NCBI GenBank assembly: GCA_001643675.2 | Contig: LSRY02000047.1 | Location: 310,001-374,000, forward strand | From: Monocercomonoides exilis PA203 | Taxonomy: Eukaryota; Protista; Preaxostyla | Reading direction: 5' to 3' | DNA length: 64,000 nucleotides | Part shown: positions 1,906 through 54,168 of the stretch, in pieces | Numbering within the stretch: the stretch's first letter is position 1 | Layout of the letters: the number at the start of each line of letters is the position of its first letter | Made by a program: the position numbers and the translations under genes | The notes under the pieces: generated by a model | Databases searched by the model: none | What the model saw: only the letters and a program-made list of their open reading frames with translations | Told to the model about the DNA's origin: nothing

Positions 1906-3639
1906 TATAATCACCCGAATTATTGGGATTTAATTTTTCATTATTTTCATTAATATTGAAAAGTTACGGTATTTTAATCACTTTCCGACGCTCAACCAAT
2001 GGAAGGTTTTATTTAAAAAATGTTTTTTTTTAAAAATCAATTTGATTAATTGAGAATATGAAGTTCAACAACTAGCATTCTAAATCAAATTACATTTTGT
2101 GAAATGCTTTCCTTTGAAAAGTGTTGAAGCCACTTTTTTGCACTTTTTAAGACTGAATGAGAGACCCAAACTGTTCAGCTTCACAAACGAAGCAAAAGGA
2201 AAGTACTTATTACATGAAAAGTATTTCTTATCGAAAAGATTTATCACGATCTCCACCAACGTGATTATTGAAATAATTCTCCTTCAACATCTTCTTCTTC
2301 TCATTCTTTTAAAAATAATTATTATCATCATCAAATTCCACTGGAATTCATTTTTATCTTCCTCTTTTGCATCTTTATTGAATAAGAAATGAATAAAGGT
2401 TTATAAATCAGCATTCAAAACAAAAGAATTTGTTTGTTACAGGAAATGTTAACAAAGAAAGTGTAAGCGATGAGAATCATTATTTGAATATCTAAAGAAG
2501 ACAAAAAAGAAAACAAAGACAAGAAGAAAAAGAATAAGATGAAGAAATGGTTTATGCTGAATAATCAGAGTTAAACACATTGACTGCTTTCGCAAACAAA
2601 ATTCTTGCAGAAGCAGATGTGAGGAAAGAACGAAAGAAAAAAGGAATGAAAAAGAGAGATAATGTGAATTAAATCTGATGGTGCTCTTTGGACGAGCTTG
2701 GAGACAAAGTGAACAAAAACCCATTTGATGAAAATGCGGAAATAAAGAAAGGATTCGAATTTCAACACATATTATTACAGCAAAAGATAACCGATTTATT
2801 TGGTGTTGCAACATAAAAATTTGATTGAAATTGTGCTTCACATTTTCAAACATTAATTCTCTAATACGAAGGAAACCATCTTTTCACCAAGCAAAAATAT
2901 TGGTGATTATTTTTGAAATCATATCTTTTATTGGAGTGTTGATTCTTTAATTATTTTATTTCTTAGGAAATGAATTCTTCAATAAAATGAAAAATGCTTG
3001 ATAATTGTTTTTATAAATTTGATGTTTGAGAAAATTTGCATGAATTAAGTATATTTGAAAAGAGTTATAAAATTTTTGTGTTCATTTATCATTATTCAAA
3101 GAGAATTTTCATTTCGAGTTTTTTGATATGTTAAATGTGGATTCAAAAATCATCACCCATATAGATGGAAATATTATCACAATTTATGGAATAATAAAAA
3201 AATAACATTCATTTAGCATTTTTGTGTTTTTAATAAAATTGTTGCATTCGTTTGTCCATCCAATTACAAAAAATCATCAGAAAGAATTTCAAAAATATTG
3301 CATTGCCTCATTTCCAGCTGTCATCATAGGAAATAATATTTCAAATTTTATAGAAAATGTTCACTCATTGAACTCTCAATCAGTGCATGAATATTCCAGT
3401 TTTAAAAAAATTATTTGATCGTGGAATCCATAACAACAAACTTAGAAAAAACAAAGCGTTCTTTTTCTTCTAAATCACAAGCCGAAAATGCCATCGCAAG
3501 ATAGAATGGTTTGAATGCATATATTACTATGGTCTTTTTGAGTTTTTTATTTTTCATTAATTTCTTCTGTTCAAACATATGCGAATTCAATGTGAATGCC
3601 TAAATCTTCTTGTTTTCTGACTGCAATGTATTTTCAAAA

Positions 3640-5063
3640 ATGCAGACGGAGAATGCCACTCAAAAATGCACTGGTTTGCAAACATATTTGCTTTTTGAAT
3701 TTTTGCTTTTTTCTTTTTATTCTTTGTTTTTTATTGAAGAATTGCTTAATGAACTGGAAGGCTGCACTGAAATTGAACAGAAAGTTAAAATCCTTGAAAT
3801 GAATAAAATGATTGATGAAACGAATGAAAAAGAATTCAAGTCTATTTTCGGGATTGAGCTGTTTGACAAAATACCAAAATGATTGAAGAAAAGAATTTGA
3901 CAATTGAAAATGCAGCTTCATTTCTAAAACACTTAGGTTATTGGAAAATAATTTATCAAGTTGATGAAGATGAACTTTTTTATTCCCAGCTGCTCAAAAG
4001 ACTCAAGAAAGTGATTCTTGAAGAATATGGAAAAAGAGAAAAGAACGAAAAGTTTTTGGTTGATCTCAGCAAATGCTATCTTTTTCTCAATTATTTTCTT
4101 GGAGATTTATCAAAAGAAATGACAGAAATTTGTGTGCCTTGCCTTCTGAAAGCTGCATTGACTAAAGATGTGACCGAAGAAGCTCAAAAAGAAGTGGAAA
4201 TGGCTTTGCTGGCATTAAGCTGCATTTGTGAATTTTGTGCATGAACGCTTCTTTATGTTTTATTAATAATCTTTTTCAACATATTTTTTAAATAGAAAGT
4301 GAAATATGAATTGTATGAAAAGGAGACGAGTGAAATCATCAAATATCATCAAGAATATCGCAATCTGACGCGACTTGCCTTTCAATCAGCTTTGCAATTT
4401 TTGGTTTATAGATTGAAATATCGCAAAAGCTTAGAAAAAGTGATTATGAATGAACTTCATTTCATGAGAGAAGCAATAAAAGAACAAGAAGAATTAAAAA
4501 AATGTGTAAATTGAAAAAGAAAAGAAGAAGAAGAAGAAGGCGAAAAAGAAATGATAGAAACGAAGATTGTCGGTCGATAGTTAAATGTTATTTTGGGTTT
4601 TTTTTATCATTGCAATTTGCATGATGATGAGGCATTAATCAGACTAATTTGTTGCCTTGTTGGATTGTGCAAAGCAGTGAAAGAGCATGAAAGAGAAATA
4701 ATCGTTTGGATCATTTTGATATAAAATCTTTTAGCACGTAATGAAACTGCAGACCTTGATATCTTTGTGAATTACGGAGCTGTTGGTGCTATTTTTGAGA
4801 TAATACGAAGAACAACGTTGAATGATTCAACCGCAAGAAATTGTTTGACGTGTTTAATGGAGACTTCGGAAAGATTGAAAAGAAAGGAGAACGAAGAAAT
4901 GAAAGAGGCAAAAAGAAAGGCAACAAAAAGGAAATTGTTTGAAAAATTGGAAGAAGAAGGATTCGAAGATATCATCACAAGCTTTCAAACTATATTGGAA
5001 TATTTTAACAGAGTTTACAATTCTCAATTATCAATAAATTTTGAAGACTATTCTGTAAATTGA
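3640..5063 (+). pseudogene. Disrupted copy of an expanded oxymonad-type helical (ARM-like) hypothetical protein family; paralog of 24914-26364
   Basis: ATG at 3640; introns 3674-3739 and ~4237-4295 sit at the same positions as in the intact paralog. Shared motifs: CVPCLLK.AL, IIKYHQE..NLTR.A.QSA, EEEG(F/Y)ED. Lesions: frameshift at ~3879 (aaaatga) and in-frame stops TGA 4512, TAG 4578, TAA 4722. Confidence 0.85.
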
Positions 5064-8900: not shown

Positions 8901-10719
8901 ATTTTGATGACTTTTCATTCTCTTTCTTTTGGTGTAAGTTCATTTTTTGATTCATTTTTTGATATGTTTTCTTCCGAAAAGGAGGAATCAAAGAAACAAG
9001 AAACAAGAAAAGATGATCTTTGTCATTCAACAACATCTTCTTCTTCTTCCTTTTCCTCTAACCCTTCTCCCTCCTCCTCTTCTTCTTCTAATAGATCATC
9101 TTCTTATCCTTCTTCTTCTTCTTCAAATAGGTTGTTATCTTGTCCTTCATCATCTTCTTCTTCCTCAAATCCGCTTTCCTCTTCCTCTTCCTCTTCCTCT
9201 TCCACTTCCTCTTCCTCTTCCGCTTCCGCTTCCGCTAATCCTTCTTCTTTTCATTCTTCTTCTAGCAGGATATCATCATCATCATCATCATCCTCATCAT
9301 CCTCATCACCACCACCACCACCATCATCATCATCTTCATCATCATCTTCTTCTTCCACTTCTCTTTTCTCTTCTGCTAATTTTCACCCTCCTTCTTCATC
9401 TTCTTCGTCTTCGGCTCATTTTAAAGACGATGCATACGAAATTCATGTTGTTCAAGATGAAGATGATGATATTCCGATTGTTTATTTGAGAAGTACATTA
9501 CGGCTGCTGACAGACAAAAGCAACGCGCCTTATTTAAGCATTGATGAAGACACTGCAACGTGCTTGGCATCTGATAGAAACTTTCTGGTGACTGTTGACA
9601 AGACTTTGAGCAAAGTGTGCGAATTAGAGTGAGTAAATGAATGAGTAAGTGAGTGAATGGATATATAATTATGTGTATTTATTTTCTAATGCTATTTATT
9701 AGAAATTGTGCCATTTTTTTGTTTGGAAATGCAATTTGTTCGCTGTTCTATTTATTATTTGATATGTCTGCCTTTCATTCTCTTAAATTGTTGATTGTCT
9801 CATATGCGTTTTATTTCTTATGTTGCTGGTGCATTTTGTTCTGTCTTTTGTGAATTGCTCCATTTTGCCAGGGGTTTTGGGAATGGTGTGTCTTCTGCTT
9901 CATTCAGAATATTAACCAAACATTGTTCATGATTTATCTAAATTTCAATTACAATATCAATATCAATTTCTTATCTCTGGATGCTTTTATTGAATTCAGT
10001 TCGTTCTCTTTCAGAGTTAATCCTGCTTTTGTTGTTGGAATTGGTCTGATCAGAAGAGACAGTCTGTCTGACATGCGCAGCAGATTGGGCGAAGACAGCA
10101 ATTCTTTTGGATATCAAAATAGGTGTGCTTCATTTTAAGAAATGCTGCAAATGTAATTTTTGTTGCTAATTCTTCTCTTTCTCATTCTTTCTCTGCCCTA
10201 TGCTTATTGGCCATATGTTACAAATAACACATTGACATATTTTCTTTTTAACATTTTTGATAATTTCAATTATTATTTCCGTTTTCATCAAAATTAGTGG
10301 GTGTGTTGCACATGGCGGATGCCTTACAAAGTGCATGGACAGCTATGACATTTATGATGTTGTTTCGATTGAATTATTTATCCCTGATAATTGCGGGAAA
10401 GAAACATCTGAAGCTCATTTTTATGTCAATGGAGTGCTTCAAGACGTGTATTTGTGCAACTTTCCAAAGAATGTAGTTTTGGGGGTGTGATTTGTGCAGT
10501 TTTATTGAAATAGCTAAATCCCATTTTCCCTTCATAATTCTCTTTCTTCATTTTTCCCCTGATTTTTTAATGATTTTCAAAATGTACTTGTTTGGATGAA
10601 TGCTATGTTTCCAGTTTCATCTATTTGGCAAAAAATCATCGTGCCGCGTTTTTGGATTCTCAAAAATATCGGGTTTTACAAATCCTGGCCATAGATCGTT
10701 ACAGGCTATCAGTTGGTAG
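5905..10719 (+). CDS. NEK-like pseudokinase with Gln-rich coiled coil, poly-Ser tracts and C-terminal B30.2/SPRY-like domain (~1294 aa, 8 exons)
   Basis: Exons 5905-5956, 6034-6338, 6434-6557, 6640-9614, 9872-9885, 10000-10122, 10298-10484, 10615-10719 join in phase (3885 nt). Kinase-like motifs: LRIIFEYCEG, HGNIHSNNI, VKLGEL, DLRQLGMVLFELCTL. SPRY-like motifs: DKTLSKGFWEC, VGIGLI, DVVSIEL, HFYVNG. Confidence 0.8.
7280..8330 (+). repeat. CAA/CAG-rich coding repeat (~350-aa Gln tract punctuated by Leu/Lys/Glu)
   Basis: Directly visible, in frame with ORF 6672..9632. Confidence 0.97.
8493..8612 (+). repeat. Perfect (TCTTCC)20 hexamer encoding poly-Ser
   Basis: Directly visible; continues imperfectly as TCT/TCC repeats to ~8740. 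Confidence 0.95.
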
Positions 10720-11729
10720 AAGTGAAAGAGGAGATGGAACTCTTTTCATTGAAATTTTGCTTCTTTGCTTATTTTCTTTCTTCACTTTTAAATCGAAAAA
10801 TTTCCGTTCATGCGTTTCTATTCTATACTTTTAATTTTTTTTCTTTTTAAATTTTTCTTTTAATCTTTCTTTTTTTCTCATTTTCCCCTGCAAAACCGTT
10901 TATCATTTATTTGCATTTGATTGCAAAAGCACGCTGATTTCTTTCAGCTTGCTTGTGCGTTGATGTTTCAGAACCAAAGCAGTGTTTGGCACACAACAGC
11001 AGACAATGCAAATGCATATTGTTTTGTGTCAATCTTCTTTGGGAGTTGAGATGTTATGCACTTGCAAATTTGCATATTGATAAACTATCTTGTTATTAAA
11101 GTCCATTTTCTATTTTATTTTTGGCAACAACCTTTTTCTTTTTGACAAATTCAATTTTCACTCAAGAATCTGGACTATTGAAAGAAAGAAAAAGTGTGTT
11201 TTAAAGACCTTTGAAAATATTGAGAACTATATTTATTGTTTTGTTGAAATGGGATTAAATGTGAAGTGAATGAGCAAGAAATGTCAAATTTAATCATGAC
11301 TCCCTTGAGAAATAAAGACAATCATTTTTGGAACCCACTCTCAAACCAATAGAACTTTTGAGTATTTGCATTTTGAACACAAATCCAAGCAAAGGCTGTT
11401 GACATTTGATGTTTTTTGGACAACATACAAACAAAATTCGTTTTCATTGAGCTTGCAAAACGGGTAACATATTCAGAAATTTCAATGATATTATGTGAAT
11501 GTTTGAGTGATGACTAAGCTTTAGACTATAATAATGATACGATTCCACATGATTCTTGTAATTCTCTGTTGAAAAACCTCTTATTTCAAAAACCCAAAGC
11601 AACTTTAGGTAATGGCAGTTCTTTTAAATCTCATGTTTCTTCTACGAAGCAAATGCACTCTTGTGTCTTTTTGTCAATTTGAAAATATTGTTTCATTCAT
11701 TAAATGTGCAAGAGGGAAATCTGCATGTT

Positions 11730-14700
11730 TCAAGATTCCGATTGCCCACAGCTTTCGTTGTTGTCACTTGCAACTTGTTCATCATCAGAATCTTCTTCAT
11801 CGATAATAGCATCTGAAATTGTGATCAGCACTGCATTTGCTGGGAAGCACTGGATAAAGTGACGCTTCAGATCGGCCAATGTGGGTCTGTCTTCAGAATT
11901 CCCTGAAGTGCACGAAATAACTGCTTGCAAATGCTTTGAGCGTTGAATTCCCTCCAAACTTGGTCTCTCTCCTTTCACAATCTTGTCTCCAGCTATTACT
12001 GCTTCATACTCCCCAAAGGGAATATTCAATGTCAGACACTCCCACGTCATCATCCCAATCGAAAATGAAACTGATTCCTTTGTTGCCTCCATTTTCTTGT
12101 TGATCACCAGTTCTGGTGCCTTCCATCTCATGCACTCTTTTTTGAATTCATACTCATCCTCAAACGCTGATGAAGGAAGGGAGTCATCATCATCATCGCT
12201 GGCGGAAGTCACAACAGTCGACGAGGAGATCGATGATGAATCTGAATCATCATTGGACAATAAATCAGAATGCATCACAATGCAGATCACCATGTGTTCG
12301 GAGAACAGCACAATGTGCGGACTCAGATTGGCAAGAGAAGAGAGCGGATTGTCCATTTCATCAAATGAGTGAAGAGCGAGATTAGCCACCCAGAACAGGA
12401 TCTGAGCAGCTGTCATCTCTCTTTCTTTCAAAGAGCCAATCGCCACCTCCTTCTTCTCGTTCCTTCCATGCAACAACATAAACAAAGAATCCCTCAGATC
12501 CACAATCAGCTTCTCGTGAGGAGACGAGCATGCCATTGCATCCACAAGGTTTGACATTGATGAGGTGGTTGGGCACAGTTCTTCCCCTCGGACAAAAGTT
12601 GATTCTGAATCTGTGGTTGAAGTGGATGAAATGGATGGTGATGGTGTTCTCTTCCTGAGCTCTTCTTCCTCCTCCTTTTCTAATGCCCAATCAGGGATCT
12701 TATCTGAGTCTTTTCCCAATATGTATTCAGTGGAGTCACTCTCAGATAGAAGATGCTCTGATGACTCTGAGTGTCCCAAGCTTTTCGCAAACACCCTCTT
12801 CTTGAACCTCTCCTCATTCTTCTTCTCAGCCTCCCTTTCGGCTCTCCTCCACTGCTCCTCTGGCGACATCTCCATCGTAACCATCTCAAACGCCTTTGGA
12901 TCCTTTTTGATGTTATCATTCACAATCTCTTCTAATTCTTCTGTCCTTATCTTCTGTTTTCTCCACCTAATAGCAAGAACAATTGAAACTATCAAAACTA
13001 TTAATAGTACAGCAGCCATTACAATCACAATCAACAACCAATAAGATTTTCCTTCTTTTCCTCCTTCAACAATTCTTTCATCCCCTTTTGGTTTGAGATC
13101 GCTTCTGTTCTTCACAACAAATGATTCGGTTGATGATGGCGAATCTTCATTTCCAAAAAGAATGCACACCGACACTTCTGTCTCCTCAGATGCTGTTATC
13201 ATTTTTGAGTCTTCCACTGTGCCTCGCACCTCACATTCTGAAATATATCCTCCCTCCAAAAACACATGCTTATCAATTTGTTTCGAGTCTCCTGTTGCAA
13301 ATACAACCTGGAATGACAAATTACAAGGCATAAGTTCACGCCCAAAAAACACAACCTCGCACTTCTTTTCTGTGCACTCAACCTTCACATCCTCCAAAAC
13401 TGGAATGAAAAGCAACGATTCTCTGTCTGTCACCACCCCTTCAACAACACACCCATCGTTCAGAATCCACAGCGATGCATTCGGCAACACTCCATCCCCT
13501 CCTTTCAGACTCATCACATTCAACTCCCCTGCTCCTGCGCACATCACATTCCTCCGAGCTGACCCATACCCTGGCACCTCCGGATTGTTGTTCCAAAACT
13601 CACTTTTTTCAATGGACACCACCCCTCCCCATATGGACATCCCTCCTTTCAGAGAATTCGCCACCTCTGAGTATTTCACACAAATCGTGCTGTTTATCGT
13701 GTCAAAAAGTGATCCATTCCACTTGCACAGTTCATCTCTCTTTCTTTCCTCTTCAATCTCTTCTTTCTCTGCCATTTTCTTTTCTCCCTCGAAAATGCAT
13801 GAGTCCAAATCAACCATTTTGCAGAAGGACACACAAAGCTCATCGCCTTTCTCTTTCTTCATTCTGTTCTCCTTCACAGTGCAGTTTGCAAATCTCATTG
13901 CTCCTCTGAATCCATTGCACATAATGACTGCCGATTCTGAGTGACTCGATGTGATGTTAGCATATTCAAAAACACTCATCATGGCAACTGGCTCGTTGTT
14001 CTCCTCTTCTTGCTCTCTTTCGGGTTTTGCTTCTTGAATATCAACAATGCTTCCATTCCTCAGCTCAACATTTTTCATCACCATTTTTTCAATCGACACC
14101 TCCCCTTTCACACCTTGCATCTCAAAAATCGATGCTTCAGCAATGATCCCTGAAATATTGATACCATCAAGGGCCATCTTGCATTCTCTTGATGCAAGAA
14201 AACTCCCACAAAGCACAGCATCAAAGCAGTTCAAACCCTGCATTCTCAAAGCAGATCCCTCTGAAAACACAAGAACAGACTTCTCAAATGTCAATCCTTC
14301 AATAACCACAGAATTCATCAAAACACTTCCACCAACACATTTCACAAGCGAAAATGGAATGCTCAACCTGTTGTCACTTCCCTCTTCACTCACTTTCATT
14401 CGCCCGAATGAACACGAGGCAACCGACAGTTCTCCATTTTCTTCGCACAACAGAACACTCGACTGCTTGCCAATCACCGACTGCTCAGAAAACACAACAC
14501 TCAACCCTTGAAGCATCACATCTCCGCTGCAGCTGATCACACTTTCTGCTTCGTCTTCTGCTCCAATCATCAGAATAACCATCCCTTCTCCTTTCCCTTT
14601 TCTCTGAAGCACAACATTCTCTGCTCGCATCCACCCTTCAATCGGCACACATCCCTCAATCAGTATCCTCCTGTCATAATCCCCCTGAACATGCTCATTC

Positions 14701-17700
14701 CCAACATCCACTGTTCGGCACGGGGCAGACACAGACCCACACATCCTTGTTTCATCAAACTTTGCGGATGACACATAAACAGTATCCGATCGGTAAAACA
14801 ATACATATCCAATCAGGTTGATATCCTCGTCCTCCTCCCCCAGCGTCGAGTCTCTCCCATACAGCGCATCTGTCCTGTTGAATACCCCTTCATCCATCCG
14901 GAACACAAACTGTCCCTCGTTGATCTGTTCCTTTATCAAATAGCAAACAACAAACACATCTCTCCCCTTCACAGCCATGTTGTTCCTAAACAGCGTGTTG
15001 TTCAGCAAAAACCCAAGCTCCCCCTCCCCATGGCAGTCCAAGAACAAAAACCCTCCTTTTCCTTTCACCGCACTGCACGATGTTCCATTCGAGTCTTTGA
15101 TCTCAAACTTCATCTCTCTTTCATATTCGCAATGCAGCACTCCTCCTTCTCTCTCTTCTGCAGAACTGCATCCTTCAAACGAGCTGTTCAGCACAACGAA
15201 AGAATACCCGCTCCTCAACACATGTGAGCCAACAATGCTGGGCTTTCTCTTTTCTTCCACTCCTGTCTGCTGAACAGAAGAGAAAATGCACCCTTCAATC
15301 CCAACTCCAAGCTCCTCTGCTCCATTCTGTTTGCCTCCATCTTCAATCTCCAATGCACATCCTTCCTCAAACTCCACTCTCATCACTTTTGTCCTGTTCA
15401 TTCCAAAATATGACGAACCACCACCAACAACAAATGCTGAAGCTCCCATCGTCAACTCATCAATCACACATCCGATTATTTCAACTTTGCCCGAGCTCTG
15501 CCGAATCAGATTAAAATTCATCCCTGATGCTCCACCCTGCTTTGCAAAATCACATCTCTCAACACACAGTTCGCTTTTCTGCTGATTCACTGCAAATAGC
15601 ACACTTTTCCTCTCTGAAAGAGCACTTCCAAGCGATATGCTCAGCATCCTCAACCTCCCTTTTCCACTCACAAGCACAGCATCTTCTCTGCTCCCACTCA
15701 TTTCACAGCTCACAACAAGAGCGGTCTTCTCATTTTCCAATCCCGATTCAATCTGGTGATCGTCAAGCTCCATTTCTTCCTTTATCCAGTTCTCATCCAT
15801 CAAATTGAGCGTTTTCTGGCTTCCTTCACTTTCACCGCTTAACAGCTGTCCCATCCCAAACCCAACTGTCCCACACATCACTCTGTTGTCTCCACATCCA
15901 ATCGCATCATATCCATCTACTGAAGATACCCATATTTCTGGTGCAAAATACTCAAACAAAAACAGACCCAAATTCACACCCTCACCAAAATGCTCATCAC
16001 TTCCCACAAACGCATTTTGTTCCTCCTTCCAAGTGCAGATCCAATCTCCAAAGTGCATCATGCTCACACTCGAATTCAGCTTGTCGCTCATCACAAACAC
16101 ATTCTTCCCCTGTTTCGCTTTGTTTGTGTCTCCAAATGCAATTGATGAAAAGAAATATTGCTCACCATCGCTTTTGCATTCAACAAACACTCCCCCTCCT
16201 TTCCCACTCTCTGAACTGCATCCACACCCTCCAAACTGTGAATCATTTACCACCTTCAGACTGCTGCCACATCCCATGCTCATTCCCAATGCTCCTCCCC
16301 TTTCTGACTTTGCTGATTTGCATCCCTCAAACACCACAGCATCCAGCTCAACAATCATTGTTGTCTGGACATTCGACGTTGTGTTCAGCACACACACACA
16401 GCCATTCATGTTTTCAACAGAAGAGATCGTGCAATTCTGCATCGATATCTTGCATTCACTTTGCGGAGATGAATAAGCGATGCACAGCATGCTCCCTCCT
16501 TCAACCTTCATGTTTCCCACAAGGCATTTCGTCATCTTCCATTCCCCAACACTCGACGAACAGGCAAACGGAGAACTTGCAAATGAGAGAACTCCCAGCT
16601 TCCCAATCACTTTCACACTCATCATTTCAACTCTGCCACCATCTGCCTTGAGAAGGCAAAACCCAACCTTCTGTTGAAATGTCAAGCTCAAAAATGAAAA
16701 GGAGCACATCTTTAGCACTCCATTTCGTGAATTCAGCAGCGACTCCACTCCTTCTGGAGATATGAACAAGCTCGGAAATAGCAAATCCACGCTTTCCCAT
16801 GTTGCATCTGCTTCACTCACCAGCACATCCTTTTCACTCCCGCTCAGTGATTCGCTCAACTCAATTCCAACTGTTTCCGAAGACCCAACCCCTTTCACAG
16901 ACACACCAGAAATATTCGACTGCTTTCCACAAACCCCATTTTCCTTCACAACAATTCTTCCATCTCCCTCAACAGAGCCCAAATGCTTCATGCCCTCATC
17001 CAGTGTTTTGCATGGGTACAGCACATGGCCACAATATGTTGCATCCTCTCCGCTCTGCCCAACATACACCTCTTTCCCCAAAAATCCTTCAAGAAACACA
17101 AACAGATCAACATCACATCCCCTTGCCACCTGGTGATCGCTCCCAAACAGCGAATTCTCTTTGTTCTCAATCGAGCTCCAAAACGGAAACATCAGCTGAG
17201 TGACACTCACCCGAAGATCCTCACACACAAAATAGATGTCTCGCCCACATGAAGCATTGTTTCTAGAAAACTGAAGTTCCATCATTCTTATCTCTGATCC
17301 GAGTGTTGCATCCAAATACATCCCACCCCCTCTGCCACTTTTTGTTTCATCATCAACCTCTGTCGATGCTTCGCATCCATCAAACGAAGTGCCATTCAGC
17401 AGAATCGCTTCCTTGTCAGCATCCACAGTGATTTTCATGCATCCGCCTTTTTTGCTCATTCTTCCCAAACATCCTTCAAAAACGCACTCAGAACATGATA
17501 TCATCCCCTTTGGCGCCAATCCATCAACAACACTCGGACAGTCACCGATTGACTCGATGCCAAAGATGTTGCACAGATTCATCTCCAGCAACCCTCCCTC
17601 CGAAAGAGACAAAAGAGGAACTGAAGAGCGCATTGATGTGCATTCCACGTTGTTCAGACTCATCTTTCCTCCTTTTGCCTCCAGAAGAGGAGCACTGAAG

Positions 17701-19814
17701 CTCAGCGATTCTGTTGCTTTTTCCCCTTCAATCCTCATATCATTCAAATCTATCCTCCCATCTCCAGTTGCTGTTTTCAACACAATCATTCTCTGCATTT
17801 CATGACGCTCCTCTTCACACACCCTCACAAAAGTCAGACTTTCCATTGCCAGTCGCCCCTCACTCACCAACCACAGGGCTTCTTTTCCATTCTCAAGAAG
17901 TTGCGAGCTGATTGTTGTGTCTGCTCTCCCTTTGCCCCTGATTCCAATCCTCTTCTCTCCCACCTCAATCGTTGTTCCCTCTTGTTCAAACCTTCCTCTC
18001 AGAAGATGAATGCTGCAATCCATCCAGTTCACAAATTGACTGGTGGCATATCCAATTGTCAGACATGCATCAGATTCACTTTTCCCGCACATGCTCTTGT
18101 TATCTGAACCAGATGTGCTCACATATCTTTCAATCAGAGTCTCACCAATCCAATCAGAAAAATCATGTGTCGAATTACTCACACTCTTTGAAGATTTCTC
18201 TGATGAGAAACAATTGAAAAGCAATTCCGAAGTCAAAGTGTATTCTGAATCACAAAAAAAATAAATATCAGTTCCAAATTCTGTGGAAGCAGTATTGTTG
18301 TGAAAATAGCAATAAGATAACCACGTTTTGGGAAGAACAAATCCTTTCCAAAGATATAATTCAATTGCCCCAGCATAACCACTATTTGCTCTGTTGTGCT
18401 GAAAGTCACATTCTTTCATTGAAAAAGGACTATTGCAACACTGAATAGAACCAGCTCCTCCAGCTTCTGCTGCCAAGCCATATTGAAAAGAGCATCTTTC
18501 AACCAGACTTCCTTCTTCATCATTTCTTTTTTGAGGAATGATACGTTCAGTTTGTTCTTTTTTTGGTGAAAATCCTGTGATATCTGATGAAAAAGAGCTT
18601 GAAGAGCTTGCGCAATGCCTGGAGGGCTCATTCGGGCAGACACATTCACAGCTTGTTGCCCCAATATATGTTGTCACAATGAGAGCATGATTTCCACTTG
18701 TTGATTTTCCGAATTCAAAATGGCAATCTCCAATATAGAATCCAGCTGAGATATTCAAAAACTCAGTTGTACCTCTATCAGAAGCTGAATTATCAGAGAA
18801 ATTTGATTTTTTGATATGCACGCACATAATGTTGAAGACAAATAATGCCCCAGCTTTTCCTGATGCTGTGCAATTCTTGAATTTGCAATCAACAATACAA
18901 AGAGCAAGTGATGGATGGTCGTTCGCTGTTATAGCTCCTCCTTTCACCCCTGAGCAACTTTCAAAATCTGTTGAGATGAAAGAAATAGAACTCGAAATGT
19001 CAGCATGAGTGGATGTATTGCGGGCATTCGAAGAATGGAAACATCGCACAAATGAGCAGTTGGTTGTGAAGAGCTGTGTTTGTTGGCTGTTCATGAGAGC
19101 AACAATTCCCCCATAGATCGCATCATCCACATAGCAAAATACACAGTTGCTCAGCATCGATGTGAAGGCATTTTCTGTGCAAATATTTGATTGTCTGTTT
19201 GTTACTGCAGTGGAGATGTTGAAGAAGAGTGTTTGTGTGAGCAAAACAGAAGAGATGCTTTCTGAGTGCAAAAATGGCCCTTGTTTCAGTTCAAAACACG
19301 AAAAAGCAGAATTCTCAACAATCAGATTCCCATCACCCACAGCCGACGAATGATCCTTCTGCGACCAAACAACTGGTAGAACTGAAATTGCGTGACAATC
19401 AGCGAAGCAAAACGATATGTCGCGCAAATGGATGTTCCCACCTTGGTGGCAAATCAGGCTTTTCTGTGAGCGTCCACAAAAAGTGATCTTGCAGTCATTC
19501 AGCACAAGCAAAGACTCTCCTTCCAGATGCACATGTTCTTGTTCTTTTGGAGTGAAACCCCCTTTTCTCACTTCCAGTGATGCATTCCTCAATTTAACGC
19601 TTGCTTTCATCTCGCTCCAATCAGAACTCTTGATACGCAATAAAAATGAGTTGCGCTCATTATTGCAAAAGTTTCCACTTGAATAGAGTGAATTGTGGTG
19701 ATTGATTTGCTCCAATAATCCAGGCGAGCTCAGCTGCTCATTCAACTGAAGGGAGTGTTGCTGCGCGATGCAATAAGACTGCACCAGATACAGCACAAAG
19801 CATTGCCATCTCAT
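11730..19814 (-). CDS. Large type I membrane receptor-like protein: Cys-rich pectin-lyase/Pmp-like beta-helix ectodomain, one TM helix, degenerate TK/TKL-like kinase tail (~2694 aa, intronless)
   Basis: Probable ATG at 19814 with hydrophobic leader MRWQCFVLYLVQSYCIA. Four V..GxD...CG.....C.T modules and many GG(A/G)(I/L/M/V) and FxxN motifs. TM YWLLIVIVMAAVLLIVLIVSIVLAI followed by RWRK. Kinase C-lobe motifs MRWKAPEL, FSIGMMTWECLTLNIPF, RPTLADL; no HRD or DFG. Confidence 0.85.
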   Translation of the reverse strand: MRWQCFVLYLVQSYCIAQQHSLQLNEQLSSPGLLEQINHHNSLYSSGNFCNNERNSFLLRIKSSDWSEMKASVKLRNASLEVRKGGFTPKEQEHVHLEGESLLVLNDCKITFCGRSQKSLICHQGGNIHLRDISFCFADCHAISVLPVVWSQKDHSSAVGDGNLIVENSAFSCFELKQGPFLHSESISSVLLTQTLFFNISTAVTNRQSNICTENAFTSMLSNCVFCYVDDAIYGGIVALMNSQQTQLFTTNCSFVRCFHSSNARNTSTHADISSSISFISTDFESCSGVKGGAITANDHPSLALCIVDCKFKNCTASGKAGALFVFNIMCVHIKKSNFSDNSASDRGTTEFLNISAGFYIGDCHFEFGKSTSGNHALIVTTYIGATSCECVCPNEPSRHCASSSSSFSSDITGFSPKKEQTERIIPQKRNDEEGSLVERCSFQYGLAAEAGGAGSIQCCNSPFSMKECDFQHNRANSGYAGAIELYLWKGFVLPKTWLSYCYFHNNTASTEFGTDIYFFCDSEYTLTSELLFNCFSSEKSSKSVSNSTHDFSDWIGETLIERYVSTSGSDNKSMCGKSESDACLTIGYATSQFVNWMDCSIHLLRGRFEQEGTTIEVGEKRIGIRGKGRADTTISSQLLENGKEALWLVSEGRLAMESLTFVRVCEEERHEMQRMIVLKTATGDGRIDLNDMRIEGEKATESLSFSAPLLEAKGGKMSLNNVECTSMRSSVPLLSLSEGGLLEMNLCNIFGIESIGDCPSVVDGLAPKGMISCSECVFEGCLGRMSKKGGCMKITVDADKEAILLNGTSFDGCEASTEVDDETKSGRGGGMYLDATLGSEIRMMELQFSRNNASCGRDIYFVCEDLRVSVTQLMFPFWSSIENKENSLFGSDHQVARGCDVDLFVFLEGFLGKEVYVGQSGEDATYCGHVLYPCKTLDEGMKHLGSVEGDGRIVVKENGVCGKQSNISGVSVKGVGSSETVGIELSESLSGSEKDVLVSEADATWESVDLLFPSLFISPEGVESLLNSRNGVLKMCSFSFLSLTFQQKVGFCLLKADGGRVEMMSVKVIGKLGVLSFASSPFACSSSVGEWKMTKCLVGNMKVEGGSMLCIAYSSPQSECKISMQNCTISSVENMNGCVCVLNTTSNVQTTMIVELDAVVFEGCKSAKSERGGALGMSMGCGSSLKVVNDSQFGGCGCSSESGKGGGVFVECKSDGEQYFFSSIAFGDTNKAKQGKNVFVMSDKLNSSVSMMHFGDWICTWKEEQNAFVGSDEHFGEGVNLGLFLFEYFAPEIWVSSVDGYDAIGCGDNRVMCGTVGFGMGQLLSGESEGSQKTLNLMDENWIKEEMELDDHQIESGLENEKTALVVSCEMSGSREDAVLVSGKGRLRMLSISLGSALSERKSVLFAVNQQKSELCVERCDFAKQGGASGMNFNLIRQSSGKVEIIGCVIDELTMGASAFVVGGGSSYFGMNRTKVMRVEFEEGCALEIEDGGKQNGAEELGVGIEGCIFSSVQQTGVEEKRKPSIVGSHVLRSGYSFVVLNSSFEGCSSAEEREGGVLHCEYEREMKFEIKDSNGTSCSAVKGKGGFLFLDCHGEGELGFLLNNTLFRNNMAVKGRDVFVVCYLIKEQINEGQFVFRMDEGVFNRTDALYGRDSTLGEEDEDINLIGYVLFYRSDTVYVSSAKFDETRMCGSVSAPCRTVDVGNEHVQGDYDRRILIEGCVPIEGWMRAENVVLQRKGKGEGMVILMIGAEDEAESVISCSGDVMLQGLSVVFSEQSVIGKQSSVLLCEENGELSVASCSFGRMKVSEEGSDNRLSIPFSLVKCVGGSVLMNSVVIEGLTFEKSVLVFSEGSALRMQGLNCFDAVLCGSFLASRECKMALDGINISGIIAEASIFEMQGVKGEVSIEKMVMKNVELRNGSIVDIQEAKPEREQEEENNEPVAMMSVFEYANITSSHSESAVIMCNGFRGAMRFANCTVKENRMKKEKGDELCVSFCKMVDLDSCIFEGEKKMAEKEEIEEERKRDELCKWNGSLFDTINSTICVKYSEVANSLKGGMSIWGGVVSIEKSEFWNNNPEVPGYGSARRNVMCAGAGELNVMSLKGGDGVLPNASLWILNDGCVVEGVVTDRESLLFIPVLEDVKVECTEKKCEVVFFGRELMPCNLSFQVVFATGDSKQIDKHVFLEGGYISECEVRGTVEDSKMITASEETEVSVCILFGNEDSPSSTESFVVKNRSDLKPKGDERIVEGGKEGKSYWLLIVIVMAAVLLIVLIVSIVLAIRWRKQKIRTEELEEIVNDNIKKDPKAFEMVTMEMSPEEQWRRAEREAEKKNEERFKKRVFAKSLGHSESSEHLLSESDSTEYILGKDSDKIPDWALEKEEEEELRKRTPSPSISSTSTTDSESTFVRGEELCPTTSSMSNLVDAMACSSPHEKLIVDLRDSLFMLLHGRNEKKEVAIGSLKEREMTAAQILFWVANLALHSFDEMDNPLSSLANLSPHIVLFSEHMVICIVMHSDLLSNDDSDSSSISSSTVVTSASDDDDDSLPSSAFEDEYEFKKECMRWKAPELVINKKMEATKESVSFSIGMMTWECLTLNIPFGEYEAVIAGDKIVKGERPSLEGIQRSKHLQAVISCTSGNSEDRPTLADLKRHFIQCFPANAVLITISDAIIDEEDSDDEQVASDNNESCGQSES

Positions 19815-20409
19815 GCGAACTTTCAAAATCAAGATTCTTCAGCTGAAAAACTGAAACGGGTCTGATCAACATTTGAAAGCATTAATTATACATTCAGTTG
19901 AGCTTGATTGCAAATTTTCTAATTTCAATGTGATAAAAATCGAAAAATGTAGATTTGGAAATGTCATTCCACGTCCAAGCGAAATCTTTCCAAAAATAAG
20001 TGTGCTCATTATATTTCTTCAACTTCTCATTTTTTTTCAATTTCAAAGTTCTTTAAAGCAAAAATTCCAGAATAAAATGAAGCGATTTTAAAAGCTGTTG
20101 AATAAATCATAAAAAAAAAAGGAAGCAAACAATTATTCATTCCAATAATGATAAGAATATCAATGTATTCCGGTATTTCTTTTATATCTCTGCCTTTTAA
20201 AAGGAAAACTCTGTCAAATCTTCTTCGCCAATCTCAAATGCCATCTCCAGAGGTTTTGCACAATCATCTTATAAAATACTTTGGTTGATTTTTCATCGCT
20301 TCTTTTTCTGATTACATCTCCAAATACGTGAGAATTCTTTGCCAAACAGCGATGTCATTCATTGGTTTCTTCCATTTTTTTTTCCTTATGAATTCCTTTT
20401 TTCCCCCTT

Positions 20410-23256
20410 TCATGGCACTTCTCTTCTCAACGACTTTGCAAAGTCTTTGGCTTTTCTTCGCTGCTTCTTTGTTTTGGCCAGAAATACTTTTGCTCGTTGG
20501 AAGCCGTGGAAATAATCAACAAGAACCAATTTCGAGTCTGCCTTGGACTTCCAAAAAGAGTTGCGCTGCTCTTCATTCTGATGAATCTTGCTGGTTTTGC
20601 TGGTCTGATTTCCTTTCATCCCACTTCCATTCTGCCACAAACCACCTGACCTGCTGCCCAAAGGAGAATGCGTGCAATCTTCCTGTAAACCCTTTTCCTG
20701 TCGATTTGTCACAGATTCATCTTTCAATACACCTGAAGAATTCTGAGCAAATAACATTGTCTGTGTCTGTTTTGCAGCTATCTCTCGAGGATCTCGCTTT
20801 GCATCCCCTTTGCTTCCTGACTCTGCTTGTGCTCGCGGAAGCGTTGGATGAGCAGAAGCATCAAACTCATCCCCAGAAAATCTGCTGCTCTCTTCTCCTC
20901 TATCATCTGCCATTTCTTTCGAAAGAACACTTGCTGCACTGAATGTGTGTGGCTGTGCTGCTGATGGCGATCCAGGCGGAGTGCACGAAGAAGGCGACAG
21001 AGAGGCTCCTTCTCTCCATTTCCCAAACTTCCCCAGCAGATCGCTCTCCAAATCGCTCTGCTCCTTCCCGCTCTCTTTGCGAACTCTCCAAAAAAACGTG
21101 CTTGCATCCCCTGAAAACGATGGCTCAGGCTTCTTTGCAGCTCCCAAGCTCCCTTTATCTGCAATGCCCGAATTCAAATCAGAAGAAGAAGAAGAAGAAG
21201 AAGAATGCATCTCGCTCAAATTTCTTTGCCCTTCCCACCTTCTGTTGCTGTCAAAAAGAGAGAACGGTGCAGACTGCCTCACTCCAAGTGTGCTGATGCT
21301 CCTTTTCGCCTGTCTTCTCCCTTTTGACGAGATGCTCTTTTCACTCCAAGCATTGTTTGACAACCTGTTCTCAGAGCCTATCGGATGTGCCGTATGATAT
21401 CCCCATCCAGCTGAAGAGGAAGATGATGCTGGCATTGATGCTTGCAGACGGAATTGTGCAGGATGCGAATGAGGCGTTGTGGCTGCTGGAAATGATGGGA
21501 TCGATTGAAGACGCCTTTCTTCGTTCCATTCAATCGGAGCTCTTCCCCAGCTGTTTGTCGAAGATTTGGCTTGCTCTTCACAAAGGCCAGACGGCATTCC
21601 ATCTCTCAGATGCTCTCCAGACACAGGAAATGGAAAGAACGAGCAAAGACTGCCAGAAAGCGGTCGAGCTCTGCCTGCTGAAAGCGAACGAGACTCAAAT
21701 CCAGAACTTGTTCTCAGATGCCGTTCATTTGAAAGCTTTCCTAAAATCGTGTTGCGAGCAGTTTTATCTGCAAAACTGAAGGATATGTCGACACTCGAAG
21801 GAGAAAGCGACCGACGGAGAAACACAGCACACGAAGGCAGTCGCGTGGCAGGAGAAATAGCACGAATTGACGAAAATGAAGACCCAGAATTTGCAGGCGG
21901 AAAACCAAATCGATAAGTGCTTGGTGAAGCACCACTTTTCTCTTGATGTGATCGCATCATTGGTGGAGGAGAAAAAAACGAACGCATTTTGCCTGAAGCA
22001 CCACCTCTGCTGTTCAGAACAGACAAAACTGCTTGAGTCGATGTGAGAGGCTTCCGATGCAACGATGCCATCACTTTTCTCGTGATCACTTTTTTCCTTA
22101 ATGATTCTTCGTTTTCAAACATCTGGCTTGCATTCCTGGTCTTCTTTTCAATGTTGCGAGTATCTTTAACCCTTGCTTCCTTGCCTTTCATTAATATCCC
22201 CTCCGCTCTTGATTTAAGATCGCAATTCTTCCATTGGCCAATTGCAGTGAGCAAAGAATGCTGAATCAGAAGCTGTGGCGAATCGAATTTGTTTGTTTTT
22301 GTTTTCAAAAACGTGTGCGGGGTGACCAAATTTGGAGATGTTTCAAATCTGTTTTTCGCGAAAATTGACATCAGTTTTCTTCTCATCTATCAGCACATAA
22401 TAAGTGAAAAAATATTTATTTATTTAAAAAAATATTTGAAAAAAAGCACAAATAAAAAACAAAAACAAAATAAAATAATATTATCACCACATACAAAATT
22501 ATAGCCAGACTGATAAATCAACTCAACAAAATTGTCCATTGTCTCTCTCAAAAGATTTGAATCACCTTCTTGCCTTTTTTTGTACAGCTCTCCTCCAATT
22601 GCTTCGATAACATCTGCTGACAGCTTTTGCTGCTTGAGTTCGTTGTCTGTGCCTTGGAAGCATTTGTCAAAGGACAATCTTTCTTGCGGAGTCAGAATTG
22701 TTAATCTGATTTTCAGATTCTCAAAAATTTCTCTGAAATGCCCATTCTGCACGCAGCAAACGCGCAAAAACCTTAAAAGCTCTCCATCAAAATTGAAATG
22801 CTTCATTATAATCTTTTTTGTGATTCTATGAAGCCTTAAAGATATATCAAACAAAAGCTTGCAAACAATTCCTCGAGAATCGAATCTCCAAGCCACTCAA
22901 TCGCTAAAAGCAAAAAGCATGTTATAATTAACTACTAACACAACGAACATACTCTCAAATTCTCTGCTTCCCACCAAAAAGCAATCGATTAATAAATGCT
23001 TAGATTTGCACTCTCTGAGTAAGTTTCCCACCTTGTCGTACAGTTTGGATCTGCCCAATTTCATCCTTAAAAACAAGCAATAAAACAAAAACAAACATGT
23101 TCATTTATTTATGATTTTATAAAAATTGATCATAGACATATTTAATGTTTTCAAAGCTGAAAGATTTTTTATCTCGCTTTTTGAGCCAACAAGAATATTT
23201 TTATGAATAAATGAAAGGCATTCCTTTATCCAAATGCCAAGCTTTAACAGAAACAT
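20410..23256 (-). CDS. Single RNase III-domain protein with long disordered Ser/Arg-rich C-terminus (~870 aa); 1-nt frameshift at ~22872 in this sequence
   Basis: Exons 23256-23138, 23065-22953, 22903-22495 and 22386-20410, with GT-AG introns in matching phase. The spliced product reads FETIEWLGDSILE/GIVCKLLF ... LRVCCVQNGHF ... KLSADVIEAIGGELY, matching RNase III ERLEFLGD, LVxN and ADxxEAxxGAxY motifs. The 3' end of the model is uncertain. Confidence 0.78.
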
Positions 23257-23332
23257 CGAAATGATTGTTTGTTTTAATTATTATTTTTTTTAATTTATTT
23301 TTTAATTTTTTTAATAATAATAAAAATTATTA

Positions 23333-24140
23333 TTATTGTGTCAAGTTTCTGTAATGTTCATTCAGAAGTGCTCTTTCTGTTGTGGTTCCTGCTTGCAACA
23401 ACCCATTCAGCGCCTTTCCCTTCAGAGGTGACTGTTCATGTTCATTGTCAGCATATAGCTTGTGTTCAAAGAGATCCCATTCGCCAAGTTTATTCATTGC
23501 TCTTCTTTTCTTCCTCCTTCGCGTTTCCCATCTTTCCAGCATTGCCCATGCTGCTCACTCCTCTCATAACCCACCATCTCCGTTCCTGACATTGATTCGC
23601 AATCCTTCTCCCTCAACAGCAGGCAAAGCCTTTTTATCTTTTGTTGTGCCTCATCTGTTTCCTATTGCTCCATCTCATTCGCTTCCTCCAGCTCTTTTGC
23701 ATCATTCAGCAAAATCTTTGTGATCCCTTCGTCATCATTGAAGGAGAAGATATCACTTTACAGAAAAACTCGAGACTCATCGCATTCATTAAATTCAATA
23801 ACCACACCAACAAGCCCATGCACAAATGTTCTCTGAATCGCTTGCAAACTTCTGTGCTTTTACGGTATGGGTCACCACTTTTGGTACTTCAATCACGCTG
23901 CACCGCAAAAGACACCACATGAGGAACATATCTGCCTTGCTGAGTTCGTCGTTGTTCGTCGTCTGCTTCTGCTGGATGAAGATGTTGAAGGCAAATGATT
24001 CAGATGAAGCGATGCTACCGAGCTATGAGTAGCTTTCTTCCTCTTTTCACTGCACGGATCTTCATTTTTAGTTGTTTTTCACTTTTCCTGGTGAATGCTT
24101 CCATCTCCTTCGATTTCAGATAAATCAGCTGTCAATCGAC
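23333..24140 (-). pseudogene. Possible decayed coding remnant of unknown family
   Basis: GC is raised relative to the flanks. A protein-like minus frame (GLVGVVIEFNECDESRVFL*SDIFSFNDDEGITKILLNDAKELEEANEMEQ*ETDEAQQKIKRLC) is broken by TAA 23758-23760 and TAG 23662-23664. No homology recognised. Confidence 0.35.
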
Positions 24141-24913: not shown

Positions 24914-26364
24914 TTAAATATTCACAAAGAAATTGGAAAAATTTTTCATAAAATGAGCATGATATTTTTCATAAACAAAATCAAATATTTCATGCAAGCA
25001 TGTGATGCTATCTTCGTATCCTTCTTCTTCCATCCATTCAAATATTTTTCTTTTGAATGTCTTTCTTTTCGCTTCATCCATTTCATCATCCGTCTTTTTT
25101 TTCAATATTTGTGAAATATTCAAAAAGAAATGAAAACAATAGAATACAATAAAATCGTTCAAAGTTGATTGTTTCATTTCCTCCAAAAATGCATCAATGA
25201 CACCTTTCTTCAACAAAGCATCAGCAATCTCGATCACGGCTTCCGTTTCTTTTCTAAAGATAAAAATGCACAAAAAGCTAAAATTTCGGTAATTTTCCAT
25301 TGCTGATCGATAAACTCGAACGATGCTGTCAGTAAGACCAGAAAGCTCTTCATTCCAATGTGGGCACGCCCCAAAGAAATAATAAACAGTAGCGAGCCAT
25401 CTCAAGATTATATTCATTTCTTCTTCTTCTCTTTCTTTTTCTTCTGTTTTTCTCTTCCAATCAATGCATTTCATCAGATGATCCAGTTCTCTGCTTGCCT
25501 CTCTCATAAATTGCAGTTCATCCACAACAACTTCATCCAAGTTATCGTCATAGCTGTATAATCGGTGAATAAAAAACTGCCAAGCTGATTGATAAGCAAT
25601 TCGTGTCAGATTGTGATGCTCCTGATGATATTTGATGATCTCTTTGATTTGCTTCAAATACAGTTCTTGTTCCAGATACTAATAAAACCGAGAAAGTCAT
25701 TTTAAAAACGTCTTAAATAAAATAGAAAAATTCAGACTTCATGTTTTATATTGCTCAAAGCCCTTAAGACCACCTCAACTTCTATTTTGGTTTCCTCCTT
25801 TTCTTCTTTGTTCAAAGCAACTTTCAGAAGGCAAGGCACACAAACAGAAAGTAATTCTTCTGAACGATCATCGTAATGCAGTATAATATAGCATTCACAG
25901 AGATCAATCAGGAGTTTTTCATTCTTTTCTTCTTTTTTCTTCTCCTCTTCAACAACCATACTTTGAATAATTTTGCTTGCCAATGATTCATTAAAATTTT
26001 TCGAATATAATTCATTCAATAATTCATAACATCCAATAGACTTCAATAAATAAATGATATTTTCCATCGGTATTTTCTTTTCTTCAATCATTTTTCCAAT
26101 TTCATTGAATCGTTCTTCTGTGAAAACAGATTCAAATTCTTCTTCATTCAAATAGGCAATCAATTCGTCCATTTCTTTGAGTTTCCAATTTTGTTCATCT
26201 GCATCGTAATGCCCCAGCTCAGAAAACAATTCTATTAAATTTTATGAATAAAAAGATGTTGAGCATTCCAAGAAACAATAAAAATATTGCAAACTTAAAA
26301 ATTTGTCCGTTGATGGCATCTCTTGAAGTTTATTGGCAGACTTATTATCGGATAATGCTTTCAT
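24914..26364 (-). CDS. Intact member of the expanded helical (ARM-like) hypothetical protein family (~442 aa, 3 exons)
   Basis: Exons 26364-26295, 26231-25738, 25678-24914 join in frame (1329 nt) with 63- and 59-nt GT-AG introns. Collinear with 3640-5063. Confidence 0.88.
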
Positions 26365-52731: not shown

Positions 52732-54168
52732 TTAATATGCAACATCACGATGTTGCCTATAATCTGGCATTGGAGCGGAAAGATCGTCACGTGCTTGTGG
52801 TTTCTGAATAATTGAATGATTCAAATTATTAGACAAATATCAAACAGATAAAAAATGAAAGTATTTCATAAATTTCAATAAAAGTAAAAAGTGTGTAGAA
52901 AAAAATTAAAAACACAAATATTAATATACAAATACATATAAATAAATTTTTTGTTTTGAAAATAGAAAAATAAAAATGTTTGTAAAGCACACTTGTTTGC
53001 AAGCCATGCAAGCAGAAATCATGACTAAGAATAAGAAGATAACAATAATAAAGGCAATAGCTACAACAATGCTGAGCCATCCGCCAAGCATATCCTTCAT
53101 GTATTTAATGATAGTTGAAAATGTCACGTTGGACATGCATTTTGCTTTTTCGGCATCGTCTTTGATGAGCCCGCAGAGATTTTCCTGAAGTGCCACTTGC
53201 ATTTCTAAGCATGTCTTCTGATTGTCACCTGAGCACATGTTATCCAAGACCTTGAAGACGGCTGTCTGTGCAGCTATGCCCACAATGCCCACAGCAAGGA
53301 ATGCAATAAACAGAATAATAACACCAATCAAGTAGATAAACAAGAGGCATCGTGACTTGTGCCCACAGCATGCGGAGATTAAACCAAATAATCCCCAAAG
53401 AAGCAACAAAGCACCAACAACGATAACTACAACGAATACAGGGGTTCCTATTGTAACTGTTGAAAACTTGGTTCCAGATGCAACTAAAAATCCACTTAAT
53501 CCTGCAATAACTATTCCGACAACGAACATCACAATTGATCCTGCAGCGATAAAGAACTTGAAAAATAGTTGATACCCCATATGGAACGATGTGACAATCA
53601 GTACAAAAAAGATCACTCCACCAATCACACAGCACACAACACCAACAGTCGTAACTGAAGTAATTATTGTCTTGACAAATTTGTTAACATCTGCGAGATC
53701 AGCTTTTGATATTCCAGAAAAAATCTTCACAATCTGATCTTTGCTTTGTGTCATGATCCATTCGATCGTTGGTTTAATGCATATGCAAGCAATTCCCAAA
53801 ATAACAAAGACAATGCACAATACCATCATCACAATGAAGAAAAGAACTATGCAAAAAGTATATTTTCCTTTCTCACGTGGGTTATATGCAGCACCCAAAA
53901 ATCCACAAACTGAAACTCCCAATCCTAGAACACCAAATATTATAACTCCTACACCAAATGCAGCAAATCCTTTCATATTCACTGTTGCAATAATTCCAAT
54001 GATTGTTGCAGCAAGGAATAAAAGCATTAATACGATGGAAATAATCCTCAAAAATATTTTCGTGCACTTATTAGCTATATGGTAAAATAACAAAAATCAA
54101 ATTGAAAAATACACGTAAAATAAGTAGTTCAAATATTTGTGATAAATTATCACTTGCAAACCAGCCAT
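52732..54168 (-). CDS. Tandem (8-TM) tetraspanin-like membrane protein (~386 aa, 3 exons)
   Basis: Exons 54168-54162, 54074-52993, 52803-52732 join in frame. Two units, each with 3 TMs, a large loop and 1 TM. Tetraspanin-like TM2/TM3 motifs GVSVCGFLGAAY and GLFGLISACCGHKSRCLLFIY. Confidence 0.78.

Follow-up and report, generated by a model that had tools for sequence, protein, structure and literature searches.

An overlooked 41-nt intron most likely holds together a predicted single-domain RNase III gene, a candidate Dicer, in Monocercomonoides exilis

EhRNaseIII of Entamoeba histolytica (EHI_068740) possesses one RNase III domain with a divergent signature and neither a dsRBD nor a PAZ domain (PMC5357909; PMC4521922). 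Its six catalytic-type residues include N and, at position D-4, K, the pair by which eukaryotic RNase III extends its catalytic set (PMC5357909), and the protein is 256 aa long with a C-terminal region of about 90 aa. Without a dsRBD, EhRNaseIII acts cooperatively to yield products of about 25 nt, and it also supports RNAi in yeast (PMC5357909; PMC4521922). Budding-yeast Dcr1 (K. polysporus/S. castellii) and Rnt1/Pac1 likewise have just one RNase III domain, in which N and K are of the eukaryote type, but they comprise an N-terminal domain as well as one or two dsRBDs. In the metamonads Giardia and Trichomonas, Dicer is a reduced RNase III enzyme (PMC2817412); the Giardia enzyme is devoid of helicase and dsRBD, but has a PAZ domain and two RNase III domains. 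In bacterial RNase III and Mini-III as well as in giant-virus RNase III, the domain lies near the N-terminus.

Monocercomonoides exilis is a gut protist without a mitochondrion. Repeats make up 46% of its genome (PMC8767320). Among other Preaxostyla, Dicers have been listed for Paratrimastix, Blattamonas and Streblomastix, namely PAPYR_3978, BLNAU_14655 and Streblo_st4808 (PMC10703272 supplement), and the M. exilis column of the table is blank for Dicer and also for Piwi (PMC10703272 supplement file 5). Because the Piwi cell is blank too, the blank Dicer cell is weak evidence, and the RNAi set of M. exilis seems never to have been curated. Here, a window of 64,000 nt from M. exilis contig LSRY02000047.1 was analyzed, in which the 658-aa ORF at 20410-22386 is 100% contained in MONOS_6768. 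The public model of this gene (762 aa, 2397 nt) begins at the internal Met 22806 and includes CVQN and KLSADVIE while excluding the ETIEWLGD signature; that automated annotation would miss the signature had been anticipated in the initial annotation of this DNA. Most likely the public model omits two small 5' exons. We propose four coding exons on the minus strand (23064-22953, 22903-22867, 22825-22495 and 22386-20410), which together give 818 codons with no internal stops in a local frame check, and the predicted 818-aa product would most likely consist of an N-terminal eukaryote-type RNase III domain followed by a 658-aa Ser/basic tail. An overlooked 41-nt intron, and not a frameshift, most likely holds this predicted gene together. 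That the gene is an intact, spliced RNase III gene, whether it serves small-RNA or rRNA/snRNA processing, appears probable, and MONOS_6768 is a good candidate for the unlisted M. exilis Dicer.

Like EhRNaseIII, the predicted product has one RNase III domain with a divergent signature and six catalytic-type residues including the extra N (22746) and K at D-4 (22626), and neither a dsRBD nor a PAZ domain was found. The likeness is architectural: MONOS_6768 has a 658-aa tail in place of the short C-terminal region of EhRNaseIII, and no sequence similarity between the two was detected. The initial annotation had described a stand-alone RNase III of the Entamoeba type, and the architectural part of this claim is borne out by motif order, spacing, profile, Atlas result and paralogue, whereas no structural match was obtained from the downstream exon: AlphaFold models of this exon, which is without the signature helix, built either unaided or with viral RNase III rows as a circular aid, reached pLDDT values of 46 and 68 and matched no RNase III fold. 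In accordance with the earlier description of a single domain followed by a long tail, PAZ, helicase, DUF283 and dsRBD gave no match in Pfam, NCBIfam or Atlas searches with the exons, although a very divergent domain may lie in the first 120 or so residues of the tail, and neither the tail nor the DNA upstream of the two full copies of the gene yielded a second RNase III domain. By its predicted domains MONOS_6768 is neither a canonical Dicer/Drosha, which has two RNase III domains per chain, nor a member of the Rnt1/Pac1 class, which has a C-terminal dsRBD, as these defining extra domains were not found. RNase III matches in two stretches of PDB 2ffl fit the two domains of Giardia Dicer; in MONOS_6768 only one RNase III domain is seen. 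With bacterial RNase III/Mini-III and giant-virus RNase III the gene shares the motif spacing and the position of the domain near the N-terminus, but it differs from them in its spliceosomal introns, its long tail and the absence of a dsRBD; the downstream exon is 9-19% identical to the viral RNase III set. K at D-4 is also common among giant-virus RNase III in the reference comparison and therefore does not mark a Dicer.

At the 5' end, the initial annotation had placed a first exon from ATG 23256 (23256-23138, minus strand). This exon is doubtful, since its frame carries a TGA in the paralogue MONOS_4794 (on the stretch L003) and its donor GTCTAT is weak; it is probably 5' UTR or non-coding. 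The possible intron A that follows (23137-23066, 72 nt, alternative donor 23096), with a T-rich tract and AG at 23066, would probably lie in the 5' UTR. The TGA in the frame of ATG 23256 is the reason for placing the coding start at ATG 23064, which is the more likely of the two. The first coding exon (23064-22953) would contain the start of the domain and ends in the E of the signature; HLLIDCFLVGS is its best match to the LALTHxS block, though it ranks only in the top 3% window-wide, and pairwise hhalign found no match for this exon. Intron B (22952-22904, 49 nt, GTATGT...TTTTAG) splits the signature. In a three-frame reading its removal joins ...GSREFE to T-IEWLGDSILE, as had been claimed, and its GT donor and AG acceptor are kept in L003. 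The resulting ETIEWLGD equals ERLEFLGD at five of eight positions, both catalytic residues included. These residues, E 22898 and D 22886, would be contributed by the 37-nt exon that encodes IEWLGDSILEE (22903-22867), in which L003 shows two changes: in the EWLGD frame they amount to I-to-V and a silent change, whereas in the competing frame they cause D-to-G and a TGA. Because these changes spare the EWLGD frame yet stop the competing one, EWLGD appears to be the frame in use. An in-frame alternative acceptor at 22896, which would skip EWLGD, was rejected on account of the TGA in L003 and a poor GAG acceptor.

The rest of the domain (DGELL, CVQN and KLSADVIE) lies in the exon at 22825-22495. 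ORF 22420-22896 contains LRVCCVQN and KLSADVIEAIGGELY, and KLSADVIE provides the downstream D-x2-E (D 22614 and E 22605), so that the metal-binding residues named in the initial annotation are present, joined by N 22746 and K 22626. Intron D (22494-22387), exactly 108 nt long as implied by the annotated range and product length of MONOS_6768 (2397 nt, 762 aa), connects ORF 22420-22896 to the 658-aa ORF. The frame of IEWLGDSILEE meets a stop near 22837, and the remaining domain is found in another frame, which had been taken for a frameshift. This claim is probably wrong, as a donor GTTTGC at 22866 pairs with AG at 22835 (32 nt), 22826 (41 nt) and 22772 (95 nt), and each of these introns restores the frame. 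In 49 of 50 RNase III references, a conserved V follows the LGD aspartate at a distance of 31 residues. With the 41-nt intron the D-to-V spacing is likewise 31 (and D-to-N 33), as compared to 34 with the 32-nt intron, 13 with the 95-nt intron and 45 with a 1-nt frameshift, which would call for 14 extra residues inserted after the signature and ahead of the conserved V. A programmed or fixed 1-nt frameshift is thus disfavoured. The 95-nt intron (22866-22772) keeps the frame and has a typical length, yet it deletes DGELL and is a minor possibility. An assembly homopolymer error was rejected as well: because MONOS_4794 carries identical bases, the frame break is not a one-off assembly error. Moreover, an ungapped profile of the references was slid along the downstream frame. 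Among the registers located upstream of D-x2-E, the best one implied the removal of exactly 41 nt; two better-scoring registers fall after the D-x2-E motif and cannot be collinear. With 66 registers, the probability that the chosen one agrees by chance with any of the three permitted lengths is about 0.05. If intron C (22866-22826, GTTTGC...CATAG, with 22835 as alternative acceptor) is spliced, the RNase III motifs would share one frame at canonical spacing; this further short GT-AG intron is most likely the better explanation of the apparent frameshift.

For comparison, nine introns of 49-99 nt were inferred in neighbouring M. exilis genes by fitting to the exact annotated product lengths; an unconstrained version was unreliable and was not used. 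Since two of the nine have the donor GTTTGC, this donor suits the M. exilis genome. In size, intron C is shorter than all nine and also shorter than the minimum of 46 nt among 21 Streblomastix introns (PMC1501061). The introns inferred in the MBF1 and AP-sigma genes (L005, 7953-8556; L187, 24605-25155) are 49-69 nt long, with GTAAAC, GTTTTG, GTATGC, GTTTAA and GTTTGC as donors.

Assignment of these exons to RNase III was further assessed by profile searches. A local RNase III HMM, built from 64 bacterial and giant-virus domains, was scored separately on each stop-free segment that the six frames of the window offer, 2,684 in all. The piece with IEWLGD took the first rank with 10 bits and an E of 0.067; the piece with DVIE, on the same strand, in order and about 260 nt away, ranked third. 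Pairwise hhalign gave a probability of 92.9 and an E of 3.8e-7 for the signature piece and an E of 0.011 for the downstream exon (22495-22825). The patterns E[FWY][LY]GD and K-x-x-A-D-x-x-E-A, both devised after the gene had been seen, each occur once among the 109,131 residues that result from translating the window in six frames. Additionally, an Atlas feature search with the downstream exon, without the signature, pointed to Ribonuclease_3 clusters at a score of 0.90, which we regard as a lead of moderate weight. Single exons as queries found no match in Pfam, NCBIfam or PHROGs, nor in PDB sequence, phage, metagenome and representative-protein searches, and with pieces of the gene as queries, within the length limits of the searches, no homologue outside the M. 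exilis genome was found. These missing curated-family and fold matches, together with a best local HMM E of only 0.067, would suit an unrelated lineage-specific protein with a chance arrangement of motifs. Nevertheless, several motif blocks are ordered and canonically spaced, the Atlas match rests on the exon that is without the signature, and the changes in the paralogue favour the EWLGD frame, which leaves such a coincidence very unlikely.

With regard to function, we tentatively propose, as the most likely role though at slightly less than even chances, that the gene encodes a non-canonical, homodimeric, EhRNaseIII-like Dicer that feeds small RNAs to Piwi-clade Argonautes. Following the splicing of introns B and C, itself an inferred step, two RNase III chains would dimerise, building two metal-dependent sites, each formed by E22898, D22886, D22614 and E22605 with the assistance of N22746 and K22626, and, as expected from RNase III biochemistry, the dimer would cut both strands of dsRNA. 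In an enzyme with neither dsRBD nor PAZ, RNA binding and product length might be governed by the basic segment after the domain, by partner proteins or by cooperative packing, as reported for EhRNaseIII. The small RNAs made by the predicted nuclease would then be supplied to the Piwi-clade Argonautes of the repeat-rich M. exilis genome. If MONOS_6768 is the M. exilis Dicer, PAPYR_3978, BLNAU_14655 and Streblo_st4808 are its likeliest orthologues; none of them was returned by searches with pieces of MONOS_6768. It is doubtful, although conceivable, that MONOS_6768 is the sole M. exilis Dicer, a ruler-less homodimer with its low-complexity 658-aa tail as scaffold, whose reduction would be independent of but parallel to that in Entamoeba. 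The same intact enzyme could also be a nuclear housekeeping RNase III that cuts pre-rRNA or pre-snRNA/snoRNA hairpins and takes no part in RNAi. Rnt1/Pac1 and Mini-III also have a single RNase III domain (enzyme classes in PMC5357909), and the basic C-terminus of the M. exilis protein may resemble a nuclear signal. However, Rnt1/Pac1 have a dsRBD, which was not seen here, and the studied single-domain protist enzyme considered here, which is without a dsRBD, supports RNAi (PMC4521922). Such a housekeeping role is considered unlikely.

Confirmation would make MONOS_6768 the likely dsRNA nuclease of M. exilis and a candidate for the Dicer that the published table does not list, and two public gene models (MONOS_6768 and MONOS_4794) would be corrected. 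It would also show whether RNAi is usable as a tool in a model for life without mitochondria. Furthermore, a Dicer-like enzyme without a ruler domain would be documented for the second time in a protist, and the role of its long disordered tail would become testable. The class of enzyme is not new in itself, and what looks like a frameshift is most likely an ordinary intron.

The tail encoded by the last exon (22386-20410) comprises a basic stretch of about 120 aa, a Ser-rich low-complexity middle and a basic C-terminus, with 17% Ser and 16% Arg+Lys overall, and has no match in Pfam or Atlas. Its reading frame is open in all five copies of the gene with dN/dS values of 0.24-0.60; the tail is under purifying selection and, judged from its sequence, is real coding sequence. 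RNA runs contained 0.67-0.71 of the words of the region, where the tail by itself predicts 0.66 and the full model 0.79, which is compatible with transcription of the tail and uninformative on the junctions. The nearness of these shares to the tail-only expectation would also fit an RNase III part that is dead, its frame having been lost before duplication, with intron C unspliced and only the tail or the 762-aa product made. The annotations of both full copies, MONOS_6768 and MONOS_4794, begin at Met 22806 or its equivalent and have no intron C, so that the annotated product would be without the first two catalytic residues, and the three copies that have no RNase III exons retain an open tail. 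Although MONOS_4794 has the same layout, keeps all six catalytic-type residues, preserves the splice sites that bound introns B, C and D and shows no substitution in the 330 nt of the downstream exon, it shares about 98% identity with MONOS_6768, and this conservation may only reflect recent copying. On the other hand, loss of the frame would entail the 14-residue insertion (45 versus 31 codons), whereas a GT-AG pair gives exactly the canonical spacing, and neither full copy has lost any of the six residues. A dead domain is therefore regarded as fairly improbable, and the reading as an intact, spliced gene is retained.

The five copies belong to a duplicated module, which in the window extends approximately over 10430-23489 (about 12.7 kb) and includes, besides MONOS_6768, an adjoining gene at 11730-19814 on the minus strand, which encodes 2,694 aa with a C-terminal kinase-like piece and is always co-duplicated. 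This module of MONOS_6768 and a kinase-like surface-protein gene of about 2,700 aa occurs in five copies on LSRY02000047.1 with 90-95% identity. RNase III exons are present in two of the five (MONOS_6768 and MONOS_4794); the other three are 5'-truncated and have an open tail annotated as proteins of 394-559 aa (MONOS_10331, MONOS_14490 and MONOS_7394). Across the five copies, the 5' limits are nested (21675, 21675, 22080 and 23489). The three tail-only copies could act as nuclease-free modulators. The nested series of 5' truncations would be expected if both full copies were themselves remnants, shortened at the 5' end, of a longer two-domain Dicer encoded elsewhere, or if upstream exons had gone unseen. 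Contrarily, the distance between ATG 23064 and the beginning of the domain is about right, the upstream DNA of either full copy showed no further RNase III signal, and no longer protein with an RNase III domain was present among candidates of 419-1,333 aa. Moreover, the upstream open frame differs between the window and L003 in 6 of 50 residues with about 5% DNA change, a divergence that looks neutral. A truncated origin of both complete copies is thus very unlikely, and we keep to ATG 23064 as the start of a single-domain gene. The module ends showed no convincing inverted or terminal repeats, and transposon ends were rejected; a segmental duplication within a large kinase-like family fits, and such a family has been described for the M. 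exilis genome (PMC6759080; PMC8767320).

The module copies have similar 3' ends and nested 5' truncations, and their identity is patchy along the length. Two truncated copies (L004, 9729-10004; L005, 9648-9923) have the breakpoint 21675 and about 275 bp of foreign upstream DNA in common. Genes of an armadillo-like family, with about 67% DNA identity between copies, are located upstream of both full copies (window 24914-26229 and 3236-4528; L003 7309-9124), on the same strand as the RNase III gene in the window and head-to-head with it in L003. Elsewhere in the window, an uninterrupted ORF of 7,036 aa spans 31378-52488, where the overlapping annotated product has only 5,634 aa, and the ORF at 52921-54093 belongs to the tetraspanin family (Pfam E 1e-11).
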